Origin: Macrostomum lignano
Taxonomy: Eukaryota
Length of the DNA stretch: 64,000 nt
Direction: 5' to 3'
Assembly: GCA_002269645.1 (NCBI GenBank)
Contig: NIVC01002036.1
Coordinates: forward strand, 1-64,000
Made by a program: the position numbers and the translations under genes. Below are positions 33,181 to 36,904 of the stretch, one piece after another. Under the pieces are notes generated by a model. It did no database searches and was not told the origin of the DNA. It was given only the letters and a program-made list of their open reading frames with translations. Each line of letters starts with the position of its first letter. Within the stretch, counting starts at the first letter, position 1.

Positions 33181-36100
33181 TCATTGCCGAATTTCCGCCA
33201 GCGAGGAGGGTCGCGGCAGCTCAGCAGGCCGCGTCCTGGGCTGCGCTGAGGGCGCTGCTGAGGAACACCGGTTTGCGTTGTGACGTTATTTATGACCACA
33301 TCTAGAACCCGATGATCACATCTAGAACCCGATGATCACATCTAGAAACCGATGATCACATTAAAAATCCTATGACCATATTTAAAGCCCAATGACCACA
33401 TCTATTAAAGCCCAATGACCACATCTATTAAAGCACAATGACCACATCTATTAAATCCCAATGACCACATCTATCCCATGATCACATCTAAAGCTCAATG
33501 ACCATATCTAAAACCCGATGACCAAATCCAAAACCCGATGAGTACATTTACGTACCTTGCGCAGACTTGTGCACCCATTCGCTAAGCCTAAGAGTACACG
33601 CGCACTTACCCGGGGCGGCTTCGTCCACTCGTTCAAATTTTGCAGGTTCGACAACAACCGGACTGCCAGGATTCGAACCAACAGACGCGTGGCCGGAATC
33701 GCAGGACAGCTGCGATGGACGCTGCTGCACTGGAAGGTGCAGATTTTTATGTGCGAGAATGATTGAGCACTATTAGTCAACGGGAAAGGCAGGGAGAGAG
33801 GCAGGGAGAGAGGCAGGGAGAGAGGCAGGGAGAGAGGAAGGAAGAGAGGAAGGGAGAGAGGAAGGGAGAGAGGCAGGGAGAGAGGCAGGGAGAGAGACAG
33901 GGAGAGAGACAGGGAGTGAGACAGGGAGAGAGGCAGGGAGAGAGGAAGGGAGAGAGGAAGGGAGAGAGGCAGGGAGAGAGGAAGGGAAAGAGGCAGGGAG
34001 AGAGGCAGGGAGAGAGGAAGGGAGAGAGGCAGGGAGAGAGGAAGGGAGGAAAAACAGAGCAGTCAGAAAGCTGAGACACGGAGATTGACGGGGGCTCCAG
34101 GAGAGAAAGCAGTAACATTCGTTATTCAAAAAGTACAACTGGAAATTCGATACTGTTGTAGGCACGATAGCCTCCTAGCAACTAAACCAGGATATTCCAA
34201 CAAAAGCAACTGGGAAAAAAACATGGCCGATCGGAGTTCCCTTCGCAATCGGACGCAGCCATGTGCATTAGTAAGCTTTGATCACGCAGTGGCCGCGTGA
34301 ACAATAACTCCTAATTCAGTCTCCAGCCTGGCGATCAATAGATGCCTAACGAGGACAGGAGATTAATTTTATCAATCTTACAGCCCTCAATAATTAATCA
34401 GGTTGGGTCGGATTTCCAGTTTTGCCTTTGCAAAAGTCAAAGCAGTTTGGGTGAGAACAGCAGTTCGGGACAGAATAGCGAACCTCGAAAGCAGAAGATT
34501 GAAAGGTGGCCTTGAAGCAGAAGACAAAAGGTTTCAGTCACAGATGCCTGCAGCCTGACCTGCGCTCTGAAATTTTCTCATTCACCCTTTCAACTGCAGA
34601 TCGGATGGCGCGCAGCTTTGACGCAATTCTTTGAATCTTTCTGTCAATATTTGCTCATGCAGGTGCAAAAGCTCAACTGTAATTACGTGATTGGCTGGAC
34701 AATTTCACTGACTCTGTGAGGCGGCTTAAAAACAAACCGTGAAATTTACTTGAGGCTACGGCTCGCAGGAAAAAGAACAGATTAGATGCAGTGATGTAGT
34801 GACCAGTTGAGTGACAAGTAGAGTGAACAAAAGAGTGAACAGTAGAGTGACCAATAGAATGACCAGTAGAGTGAACAAAAGAGTGAACAGTAGAGTGACC
34901 ATTAGAGTGAATATTAGAGTGACTAATCGAGTGACCAAGAGAGTGAATATTAGAGTGACCGATAGAGCGAAAAGTAGAGTGACCAATAAAGTGACCAGTA
35001 GAGTGACCAGTAGAGTGACCAATAGAGTGATCAGTAGTGTGACAGCTACAGTGTCCAGTTAGAGTGACAAGTACTTTCCCCCTAGTCACTCACGCTGCCG
35101 CATCCGCAGCCTCCACTTGGACAAGTTGGCCACCTGGATGAGCACCCGCAGGTCCAGGCACTCTTTCTCCTTGTTCTGCAGCTCCGTCGTCAGCCGTTTC
35201 TGCCGCTCCATGCTGAAGGCGGCGAGCCGCTGCTGCTTCTCTAGCAGCCGCGCCAGCTGACGGCGCTCCGACCAGCTGACGCCTGCGAGGGGGGGGTTGG
35301 CGAGGGAAGTTTATTGTGACTGCGCTCGCATGTTCAGCGCTGAGTCGGCTCACCTCCGGCCAGGTGCAGAATCCGCAGCAGTCGAAGGCCGATCGCCAAA
35401 GCCAGGAGGTCCCGGATCAGCGGGCTGACAGCGGCGAAGTGAAGGGAGAAATTCAGGCAGCAGCTGACCACCGAAATCAGGGCGTCCACAGCCTGAGGTT
35501 GCGGGGTTGGGGTGAGATCATCATCTTCTTCTTCAGTCCTTTTCTCGCCTCGCGGCGTGGACGCTCTGCCGCCGACTCACTGGCAGGTCTTTCGATGTCT
35601 GGCCATGTTCGTGCGGGCCAGCATCCTCCCGCAGTCATCATCATCATAATCACCTTCACCGTCGTCATCATCATCATCATCATCATCATCATCATCATCA
35701 TCATCATCATCATCATCATCATCATCATCATCATCATCATCATCATCATCATCAACATCATCATCAACATCATCATCATCATCATCATCATCATCATCAT
35801 CATCATCATCATCATCATCATCATCATCATCATCATCATCATCATCATCATCATCATCATCATCATCATCATCATCATCATCATCATCATCATCATCATC
35901 CTCATCATCAGCATCTAGCCAACTCAAAACACCCACTCACATCGATGGCAGTCAGCCGGTTTCGTTTCCGACTTCGAGAATATCGAGCTACGCGATAAAT
36001 TGTCTGCAGAATGAACGAATTATAAAATCTCATAAGTTTAACGGCAGATGAATATTTTAATATTTAATAACTGAGAGTGGCGCAGACCTCGATGACAAAC

Positions 36101-36904
36101 ACCACAGAGAGCACCAGAACTGCGTAGAATGCCTTGCGGCTCTCTGCGCCTGAAATTATTGTTGCGAGGACATATTTGACGCGTCTGTCTGTCTGTCTGT
36201 CTGTCTGTCTGTCTGTCTGTCTGTCTGTCTGTCTGTCTGTCTGTCTGTCTGTCTGTCTGTCTGTCTGTCTGTCTGTCTGTCTGTCTGTCTGTCTCTGTCT
36301 GTCTGTCTGTCTGTCTGTCTGTCTGTCTGTCTGTCTGTCTGTCTGTCTGTCTGTCTGTCTGTCTGTCTGTCTGTCTGTCTGCCTGTCTGTCTGTCTGTCT
36401 GTCTGTCTGTCTGTCTGTCTGTCTGTCTGTCTGTCTGTCTGTCTGTCTGTCTGTCTGTCTGTCTGTCTGTCTGTCTGTCTGTCTGTCTGTCTGTCTGTCT
36501 GTCTGTCTGTCTGTCTGTCTGTCTGTCTGTCTGTCTCTGTCTGTCTGTCTCTGTCTGTCTGTCTGTCTGTCTGTCTGTCTGTCTGTCTGTCTGTCTGTCA
36601 GCAGGCATTTAACCAACCCTGAGCCCCCGGTCCTTGGCTCGCCGCGGCCAGGTCCAGGGCCAGCAGGTGGCTGACCAGCAGCAGCTGCAGCCACACCAGC
36701 AGCAGCGCAGCGCAGTCCAGCCTGGCGGCGCGCATTCCGGAGAGCTTCTTGGCGCCGATTCTGTGAAGAAGGGAAGCTTAAAAAAACCATCAACATGCCA
36801 TCGAATGTCATAAATCTGTCAATTTCAATTTTGAAACCGCTGACTCACTCGATCGCAGCCACGGCGGTTCCGCAGTCAGTGGAACTGTCAGCCACGGGAG
36901 CCAT
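33181..36904 (-). CDS. Hv1/TMEM266-like voltage-sensor-domain protein (S1-S4 plus coiled coil); exons 36904-36849, 36760-36618, 36149-36088, 36003-35941, 35492-35354, 35282-35094, 33729-33610, 33257-33181; ~282 aa
   Basis: All seven introns GT-AG and phase-consistent. S1 [25 protein letters not shown]; S2 [15 protein letters not shown] (F-x-x-E); S3 [14 protein letters not shown]; S4 [15 protein letters not shown]; tail RRQLARL...[13 protein letters not shown] resembles the Hv1 coiled coil. Exons 1, 7 and 8 are less certain; the frame could instead stop at 35086. Confidence 0.75.
33786..34048. repeat. 12-bp purine repeat (GGCAGGGAGAGA), intronic
   Basis: Direct inspection. Confidence 0.9.
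34795..35068. repeat. 12-bp repeat (AGAGTGACCAAT variants), intronic
   Basis: Period of 4 codons. Confidence 0.85.
35635..35905. repeat. (ATC)n microsatellite, intronic
   Basis: Direct inspection. Confidence 0.95.
36183..36598. repeat. (GTCT)n microsatellite, intronic
   Basis: Direct inspection. Confidence 0.95.

Follow-up and report, generated by a model that had tools for sequence, protein, structure and literature searches.

Structure of the gene model

We analysed a stretch of 64,000 nucleotides from the flatworm Macrostomum lignano (assembly GCA_002269645.1, contig NIVC01002036.1, positions 1 to 64,000; hereafter the window), on the minus strand of which a gene for a voltage sensor resembling the proton channel Hv1 (HVCN1) had been predicted. 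The core of this gene consists of five exons spanning 36760 to 35094. They encode a four-helix voltage-sensing domain (VSD) followed by a C-terminal helix; Hv1 is the best relative of this protein in every comparison, and the aspartate of the Hv1 selectivity filter is replaced by glutamine.

The minus-strand model was rebuilt exon by exon from the window. The eight exons of the original prediction were all recovered, with the same coordinates and consistent phases, and with GT..AG at every intron; they add up to 849 nucleotides, that is, 282 residues and a stop codon. Independent support was obtained for exons 2 to 6, as described below, and not for exons 1, 7 and 8, so that the full eight-exon gene stands in part only.

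Exon 2 (36760-36618) follows a strong acceptor (7.6 bits) and encodes S1 together with the first part of the S1-S2 loop. Its residues include Q44 (codon CAG at 36685-36687), H50, L51 and D55, of which Q44, L51 and D55 occupy the D112, E119 and D123 positions of human Hv1, our reference for residue numbering. Exon 3 (36149-36088) encodes the first half of S2, with F74 (H140 position), Y75, F84 (F150) and E87 (E153). Its acceptor is a tandem one, at 36149 or 36143 (tttcag/GCGCAG/AGAGC); both sites keep the frame, the choice between them amounts to the gain or loss of two loop residues (Gly-Ala), and the profile search described below favours the downstream site. Exon 4 (36003-35941), with a good acceptor (4.2) and a good donor (4.0), encodes the second half of S2 and an Arg/Ser-rich S2-S3 loop, including R91 (K157) and D108 (E171, or D174 in a gapless reading). 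S3 and S4 are both encoded by exon 5 (35492-35354). S3 contains D111 (D174), I114 and S115 (V177 and V178), S118 (S181) and N122 (D185), and S4 carries the motif R145-L-L147-R148-I-L-H151-L-A-G154, in which the H151 codon is CAC at 35364-35366. Intron 5 (35353-35283, 71 nucleotides, phase 1) lies inside the codon of G155, at the G215 position. Exon 6 (35282-35094, residues 155-217) encodes a helix that continues S4 and is probably the homologue of the Hv1 coiled coil. Hydropathy gave four hydrophobic segments, at approximately residues 33-57, 72-92, 107-128 and 133-154.

Both ends of the 282-residue protein are uncertain, and exons 1, 7 and 8 are without independent support beyond an open frame and splice sites. 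Exon 1 (36904-36849), which is tentative, would encode an N-terminal cytoplasmic segment of 18 codons and 2 nucleotides, from an ATG at 36904 to a GTGAGT donor (score 2.9). Its frame is open; it lies outside the Hv1-homologous region and shows no frame-specific codon signal, and the upstream piece picked by the profile search was a different one, equally weak. M28, in exon 2, would be an alternative start if the strong acceptor of that exon were a trans-splice site. At the other end, exon 7 (33729-33610) encodes a low-complexity Pro/Ser-rich tail, and exon 8 (33257-33181) ends with a TGA at 33181-33183. Both are phase-compatible and both are doubtful. The splice sites of exon 7 are good (acceptor 3.0, donor 6.4), the acceptor of exon 8 is weak (0.8), codon periodicity is absent from the two exons (GC at the three codon positions 0.74/0.61/0.58, log-likelihood ratio -0.14), and neither exon shows homology (-4.1 bits for exon 7). 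If instead the exon 6 donor is read through, the protein terminates at a TGA (35086-35088) after ...RQRE with 219 residues, which places its end just after the coiled coil, as in Hv1; this end is as viable as the one provided by exons 7 and 8. Poly(A) signals did not tell the two candidate 3' ends apart.

Several introns are occupied by tandem repeats, as annotated by TRF. A (GTCT)n/(GACA)n microsatellite of 106 copies (36183-36599) fills intron 2, and intron 4 contains a (TCA)n/(ATG)n microsatellite of 94 copies (35635-35915), which translates to poly-Met. The intron 6 region (33787-35073) holds two 12-mer minisatellites (33787-34048 and 34798-35073).

The protein had been described as having neither pore nor enzyme domain, and the surroundings of the locus agree with this. 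Between the end of a UBE2Q2-like gene (28971) and a retrotransposon (40636), the exons of the model are the only non-repeat open frames, and a tblastn search of the window with the phosphatase/C2 region of Ci-VSP gave a best E value of 0.76, with no match at the locus. On the open reading frame (ORF) survey around the locus and the tblastn search of the window, an attached phosphatase or pore was rejected; together with the hydropathy profile, these results leave a four-helix protein with an Hv1-type C-terminal helix.

Coding signal, splicing and null tests

A codon model was built from five gene segments located elsewhere in the window. Exons 2, 3, 5 and 6 had in-frame log-likelihood values of +0.26 to +0.70 bits per codon, compared to -0.03 to -1.28 off frame, and their GC content at third codon positions (GC3) was 0.70 to 0.94, compared to 0.78 to 0.90 in neighbouring genes. 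Exon by exon, GC3 and log-likelihood were 0.89 and +0.70 (exon 2), 0.70 and +0.26 (exon 3), 0.78 and +0.44 (exon 5), and 0.94 and +0.69 (exon 6). When these four exons were pooled, the GC content of the first, second and third codon positions was 0.70, 0.41 and 0.85, a strong three-base periodicity; the short introns have a GC content of 32 to 38%. A homology-blind codon scan was also run on the whole window. About 15 loci passed, and they correspond to recognisable genes, to parts of a retrotransposon, and to two ORFs at 36604-36777 and 35089-35310, which contain exons 2 and 6 respectively and have the frames used by the model.

Homology was assessed with a hidden Markov model (HMM) of 120 canonical Hv1 proteins, from which the model was excluded. 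In a six-frame scan, no exon taken singly was significant against this HMM. A spliced-profile dynamic programme was purpose-built, the first version of which used a flat intron cost. With this version, reversed and Markov-simulated DNA scored 40 to 59, compared to 45 for the locus; the search was dropped as a test because null DNA scored as high as the locus, and for the same reason the score of about 34 bits obtained by the model against the Hv1 HMM (see below) is not to be read as a P-value.

When generic weight matrices for donors and acceptors were used, the locus gave the top match of the minus strand (56.2). This optimum relies on the poly-Met of the (ATG)n microsatellite, taken as a false S1-S2. 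The same poly-Met (35635-35915) and a Gln/Lys/Pro-rich repeat (17009-17389, at about 17.0 to 17.4 kb) gave the highest spurious scores of the window against the Hv1 profile, and low-complexity peptides encoded by such repeats would mislead any spliced-alignment gene finder here unless they were masked. Limited to the introns originally predicted, the locus scored 38.9. Once tandem repeats were masked, the free optimum was 40.7 and contained exons 2, 4, 5 and 6 exactly, and exon 3 with its acceptor 6 nucleotides downstream; exon 4, which is required for the topology, is therefore among the exons recovered by the profile search. Dropping either the acceptor or the donor of exon 5 reduced the score. 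The null maxima under the same scheme were 22.3 to 37.5 in 24 simulated 64-kb sequences (mean 29.2, standard deviation 4.3), and 30.5 and 37.1 in the reversed window; the remainder of the window did not exceed 33.3. The locus (38.9 to 40.7) tops all 26 nulls, by just 1 to 3 bits. The separation was larger when the best null chains were rescored as proteins with HMMER. These chains, which are short, obtained -60 to 22.4 bits (n = 25), compared to 34.1 bits over 184 residues for the model, that is, about 12 bits above the best of them.

The position of intron 5 provides a separate line of evidence. Introns were mapped in four Hv1 genes, those of a brachiopod (Lingula), a mollusc (Crassostrea virginica), a fish (Takifugu) and a scorpion (Centruroides), counted as four phyla. 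Each of these genes has a phase-1 intron in the G215 codon (...LN/G...), and the phase-1 intron of the model in the G155 codon falls in the same alignment column. We calculate a probability of approximately 0.03 that the two would coincide by chance (5 introns x 3 conserved sites for about 540 codon-phase slots). The two other ancestral Hv1 introns, of phase 0 after Q102 and of phase 0 before V138, are not exactly shared by the model. We conclude that exons 2 to 6, which cover S1 to S4 and the coiled-coil region, are well supported.

Relation to Hv1

Against the Hv1 HMM, the score of 34.1 bits was obtained over columns 54-229, from S1 through the coiled coil, whereas the best of 1000 shuffled versions scored 5.5 bits. 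A comparison with 46 diverse Hv1 proteins using hhalign gave a probability of 94.6% and an E value of 6.5e-8 over 170 columns. Among PDB sequences, the best phmmer match was the mouse Hv1 chimera 3WKV (E = 0.023), in register from S1 to past S4, and the second was a NavAb chimera (E = 0.89). Pairwise phmmer scores with canonical Hv1 proteins were 16 to 20.5 bits. The proposed Hv1-like identity is thus borne out, Hv1 being the best match in the phmmer, HMM, hhalign and pairwise comparisons. The VSD alone scored 18.4 bits against the Hv1 HMM, and the C-terminal helix alone was weak (3.9 bits); in the complete model, the alignment of the helix extends to column 229 of the HMM and to residue 209 in hhalign, with E253, E255 and L259 kept.

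The protein was described as new by the original prediction, and it has no match in the protein collections searched. Neither the model nor three alternative versions of it are present in a collection of 15 billion proteins, in which no protein matched the model at E <= 0.01. When the exon 5 peptide was used for an exhaustive search, it returned just one spurious match, teneurin/NHL-like, and no orthologue or paralogue. Our literature searches turned up no description of an Hv-type gene from M. lignano; the Macrostomum entry of a review of HV channels is a transcript accession of M. poznaniense only (PMC10377628).

Residues kept and replaced

Residue correspondences with human Hv1 agree in five alignments (phmmer to 3WKV, two MAFFT alignments, the Hv1 HMM and hhalign). 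The alignment had been thought to be gapless; the offsets between the two proteins are in fact 68, 66, 63 and 60 from S1 to S4, and three small loop indels are needed. This correction leaves untouched the residues highlighted by the original prediction. Its six substitutions hold in all five alignments (D112 to Q44, E119 to L51, D185 to N122, W207 to L147, R211 to H151, and N214 to G154), the two codons it placed at 36685-36687 (Gln) and 35364-35366 (His) are correct, and the residues it listed as kept (F150, E153, D174, R205, R208, and a basic residue at 157, here R91) are confirmed. Further losses came to light, namely H140 to F74, S143 to V and V178 to S115.

Canonical Hv1 proteins have 46 alignment columns with a conservation of 85% or more; the model keeps 20 of these and has lost 26. 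The kept residues are V109, V116 (V48 in the model), D123 (D55), Y141, F150 (F84), E153 (E87), D174 (D111, or D108), S181, L200, L204, R205 (R145), L206, R208 (R148), G215, E253, E255 and L259. Replacement is conservative at K157 (R91), K169, E171 and K221. At the filter position, Asp is found in 45 of the 46 canonical sequences and Gln44 in the model. In the Hv1 family, the acidic filter residue is D112 or a Glu, and position 116 can substitute for it; in the model, position 116 is occupied by V48. The S4 signature RxWRxxR/K, in which the canonical set has an invariant W and an R in 45 of 46 sequences, reads RLLRILH.

A change at both the filter and the third arginine was seen in one other sequence. 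Protein P0108, translated from a Logan contig (ERR6349652; L008), comes from an otherwise canonical, annelid-like Hv1 transcript that scores 205 bits against the profile. It has Asn at D112 and Ser at R211 (LVILNCLLV; RLWRITSILNG), with W207, E119 and D185 intact, so that both members of the selectivity couple have been lost together in nature.

Comparison with related voltage sensors

The model shares with Hv1 a four-helix sensor without pore domain; directly after it comes a C-terminal helix that aligns with the Hv1 coiled coil and is its probable homologue. F150, E153, D174, D123, S181, R205, R208, G215 and the phase-1 intron at G215 are common to both. It differs from Hv1 by the absence of an Asp/Glu filter, by RLLRILH in place of RxWRxxR, and by the changes D185N, E119L, H140F, N214G and V178S.

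A second point of comparison is TMEM266 (HVRP1, C15orf27), which has V111 and M185 at the D112 and D185 positions, is non-conducting, senses voltage and forms a coiled-coil dimer (PMC6392501). Like the model, it has a neutral residue at D112, a non-acidic one at D185, and an intact charge-transfer centre, and it offers the best functional analogy for the model. TMEM266 nevertheless keeps three S4 arginines together with K213 and D217, and has a disordered tail of about 250 residues (PMC6392501), whereas the model has two Arg and a His, no equivalents of K213 and D217, and a tail of at most 65 residues, and this only if exons 7 and 8 are real. Some of the comparison sequences, including the TMEM266-like ones, were taken from a supplement damaged by optical character recognition (OCR). 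With the invertebrate TMEM266-like sequences read in this way, the model scored 6.6 bits (C15orf27 homologue of Lingula), 5.3 bits (Dendrobeania) and 13.6 bits (Limulus). Orthology with TMEM266 was rejected on these scores (5 to 14 bits, compared to 16 to 20.5 for canonical Hv1), which concern invertebrate TMEM266-like sequences only. The TMEM266-type states of the model look like an independent loss, not a sign of orthology.

TMEM266-like genes occur in several invertebrates, and proteins of Saccoglossus kowalevskii (LOC102802600), Oikopleura dioica and Limacina antarctica are reported to derive from HV channels and to be unlikely to select for protons; the Saccoglossus protein reportedly has Gln for the filter Asp and lacks the S4 Trp (PMC10377628). 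These three proteins obtained 45 to 108 bits against the canonical Hv1 HMM, each above the model, and in pairwise comparison with the model they scored 12 bits (Saccoglossus), 5 bits (Oikopleura) and 0 bits (Limacina). Because pairwise similarity is low, they represent lineages separate from that of the model, and orthology with the Gln-type protein of Saccoglossus in particular was rejected on its 12 bits. A His at the S4 position R3 is reported for none of the three. The general class of Hv-derived proteins that lack the proton-channel consensus is therefore already described, with TMEM266 and these three proteins as members. The combination of changes found in the model, especially the His at R3, is not among the Hv-derived cases consulted here. 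A new subfamily restricted to the VSD had been put forward; the VSD-only architecture holds, and the subfamily is not established, since our searches yielded this one gene and no further member.

The two flatworm HV genes of the review, from Schistosoma, share the phylum of M. lignano and are also divergent (53 to 94 bits against the Hv1 HMM). They differ from the model in their filter residue, which is still acidic, in their S4, which retains RLW, and in the length of their S3-S4 loop, which is long (PMC10377628); orthology was rejected, the pairwise score with the model being approximately 0 bits. Ci-VSP resembles the model in having no acidic S1 filter residue and no S4 Trp (PMC10377628). 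It differs by its phosphatase/C2 region, of which no exons are found in the window, and by the absence of a coiled coil after S4, and with a pairwise score of 7 bits an identity of the model as a VSP was likewise rejected.

Finally, sensors with a histidine in S4 are known outside the Hv family. In Shaker, Nav1.4 and Nav1.5, proton transport or gating pores selective for H+ arise when an S4 Arg is changed to His, and Kv3.2 of the flatworm Notoplana atomata, which naturally has His and Gly in S4, carries a physiological omega current through its sensor (PMC3982104). As with H151 of the model, the His of these proteins sits at an S4 gating-charge position. They are, however, six-helix channels with a separate pore, and apart from the Notoplana channel they are engineered or disease mutants.

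Predicted function and alternative explanations

We favour, with moderate confidence, the view that the locus is a real, unannotated Hv1-derived gene that evolved fast in its own lineage, and that its product is a dimeric voltage sensor, probably modulated by pH through His151, which is not a classical proton channel. The four-helix VSD would be followed by the Hv1-type helix which, by analogy with Hv1 and TMEM266, probably makes the dimer. In the alignments, the charge-transfer machinery of S4 is kept (the F84 plug, the internal acids E87, D108 and D111, the external acid D55, and R145 and R148), and the residues tied to proton-selective conduction or to the gating signature are all replaced (D112, R211, W207, N214, D185, E119, H140 and V178). 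Such a domain would still move with voltage, the charges being two Arg and the titratable His151, and because of this His the voltage response may depend on pH. Neutral substitutions of D112 abolish proton selectivity (PMC10377628). The protein would then not be a classical proton-selective channel based on Asp; it would be a TMEM266-like sensor with an output other than an Hv1-type proton current. Its function (non-conducting, pH-tuned or with altered selectivity) is entirely inferred.

A number of results weigh against this view. The model is the most divergent Hv-like sequence in our comparison. On the scale of the Hv1 HMM, canonical proteins score 229 to 344 bits, non-canonical Hv-like and TMEM266-like proteins 53 to 152, the Ci-VSP sensor 50.5 and the degenerate Oikopleura protein 44.7, so that the model lies below even the Ci-VSP sensor. 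The Pfam family Ion_trans (PF00520) did not match the model even at E <= 10, while a canonical Hv1 protein used as control (P0064) scored 43.3 bits. The coiled-coil pattern of the C-terminal helix is weak, with L, I, V or M at 41% of the a/d positions in the best heptad register. The codon usage of exon 4 is atypical (GC3 0.33, log-likelihood ratio -0.55). Once corrected for chaining, the homology signal is modestly above null (P approximately 0.02 to 0.03 by rough Gumbel arithmetic). Lastly, neither transcript, nor orthologue, nor paralogue was found in the protein collections searched.

Among the alternatives, the one that survives best, although we consider it unlikely, is that the gene is real and its product still conducts by another chemistry, either with His151 as a proton shuttle or gating pore, or through an anion or non-selective leak. 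The S4 histidines of Shaker, Nav1.4 and Nav1.5 and the Notoplana Kv3.2 channel, which conducts through its sensor (PMC3982104), are precedents for the first possibility, and the anion permeability of D112-neutral Hv1 mutants (PMC10377628) is one for the second. One position of the hydrophobic gasket is also polar in the model (V178 to S115), and P0108, with Asn at D112 and Ser at R211, indicates that both positions change as a pair in nature. However, N214 (the residue that leaves the inner pore of Hv1 open), W207, D185 and E119 are changed as well, and the geometry of the water wire may not survive; moreover TMEM266, which is neutral at the D112 position, has small leak currents only (PMC6392501). 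A specific form of this idea, more speculative and in our opinion rather improbable, is that a Gln-His pair has taken the place of Asp112-Arg211, and that His151, facing E153 and D174, would act both as titratable gating charge and as proton shuttle, by analogy with the chemistry of Shaker Arg to His mutants. If this were true, the Gln-His sensor would be a proton carrier or gating pore in which voltage and pH are naturally coupled, and the paired loss of D112 and R211 in P0108 would suggest that evolution has repeatedly left the classical filter by this route.

A decaying or silent paralogue, that is, an Hv1 duplicate issued from the genome duplications of M. lignano, under relaxed constraint and with no present function, is a less likely explanation again. 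It would account for the extreme divergence within the family (34 bits), for the loss of 26 of the 46 highly conserved columns, for the odd codon usage of exon 4 and the undefined ends, and for the absence of any transcript-derived or annotated protein from the collection of 15 billion sequences. Against it, some 190 codons across five exons are open and their ten splice sites intact, GC3 (0.85) is like that of expressed neighbours, and the charge-transfer centre, two S4 Arg, D123 and S181 are retained amid the divergence, which needs purifying selection. The database absence carries little weight: the UBE2Q2-like gene 4 kb away, although clearly real, is missing as well, and a single gene is called in 21 kb of the contig. 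As for the absence of any gene, the locus being a chance chain of open frames and GT/AG sites that happens to resemble Hv1, it is already disfavoured and seems very improbable: single exons are insignificant against the Hv1 HMM, unconstrained chaining does as well or better in reversed and simulated DNA, and the free optimum of the locus uses a poly-Met microsatellite, but homology-blind codon peaks coincide in frame with exons 2 and 6, three-base periodicity is strong, the splice-aware score exceeds all 26 nulls and the HMMER score exceeds 25 null chains by about 12 bits, and intron 5 has the position and phase of a conserved Hv1 intron (chance approximately 0.03).

Other features of the window

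The window is rich in micro- and minisatellites, and Rfam gave no match in it. The first 10 kb of the contig (1-10047) form a near-perfect inverted repeat with arms at approximately 1-3212 and 7215-10047. The arms are 99 to 100% complementary over their unique parts (2094-3212 and 7215-8334) and contain Pro/Ser-rich satellites, and the approximately 4 kb between them hold remnants of a Tc1/mariner-like transposase (3447-3821). This structure could be a palindromic artefact of long-read assembly or a foldback element.

On the plus strand, a transcription-factor gene (17944-20262) comprises a PNT/SAM-like exon and an ETS DNA-binding exon (CELWKFLLDLL...RYYY-type motif region), with a minisatellite between them. 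The UBE2Q2-like gene, which encodes a ubiquitin-conjugating enzyme, lies on the same strand at approximately 26300-28971, and its last exon shares 64 to 66% identity with UBE2Q2 of vertebrates. A protein database of 5.8 billion clusters contained no copy from M. lignano, and this gene is therefore unannotated in the assembly.

The Hv-like gene is preceded, at a distance of 3.7 kb upstream, by a non-LTR retrotransposon (40636-44895, minus strand) with an uninterrupted ORF of 1419 residues that includes a PHD finger, an EEP endonuclease, a reverse transcriptase and an RNase H. A truncated second RNase H fragment (39624-40349, minus strand) is found just downstream of it, flanked by microsatellites coding for poly-Asn/Thr. 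Further along, an intron-less pyrophosphatase coding sequence (56615-57484) exactly matches a M. lignano protein of NCBI (cluster mate PAA75011.1). It is the sole gene called in 21 kb of the NCBI record and lies 19.7 kb from the Hv-like gene. Strong codon-usage peaks also mark an uncalled ankyrin-repeat gene (50725-51597 and 53338-54051) and to uncalled exons at 59102-59350 and 63145-63360, all on the plus strand.

Implications

If the gene is not expressed, it would simply be a duplicate that has diverged, in a genome itself duplicated and rich in repeats, and would mainly illustrate how incomplete the annotation of the assembly is. If it is expressed, it would amount to a natural experiment on the Hv1 scaffold, in which the sensor core has been kept while D112/R211, W207, N214 and most external acids were exchanged together, and to which a histidine at a gating-charge position has been added. 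Transgenesis and RNA interference exist for M. lignano, so that a phenotype could be sought. An expressed gene would bear on the smallest set of residues needed to make a proton channel out of a voltage sensor, on the S4 histidine as a physiological proton pathway, and on the use that is made of pore-less, non-conducting sensors such as TMEM266.

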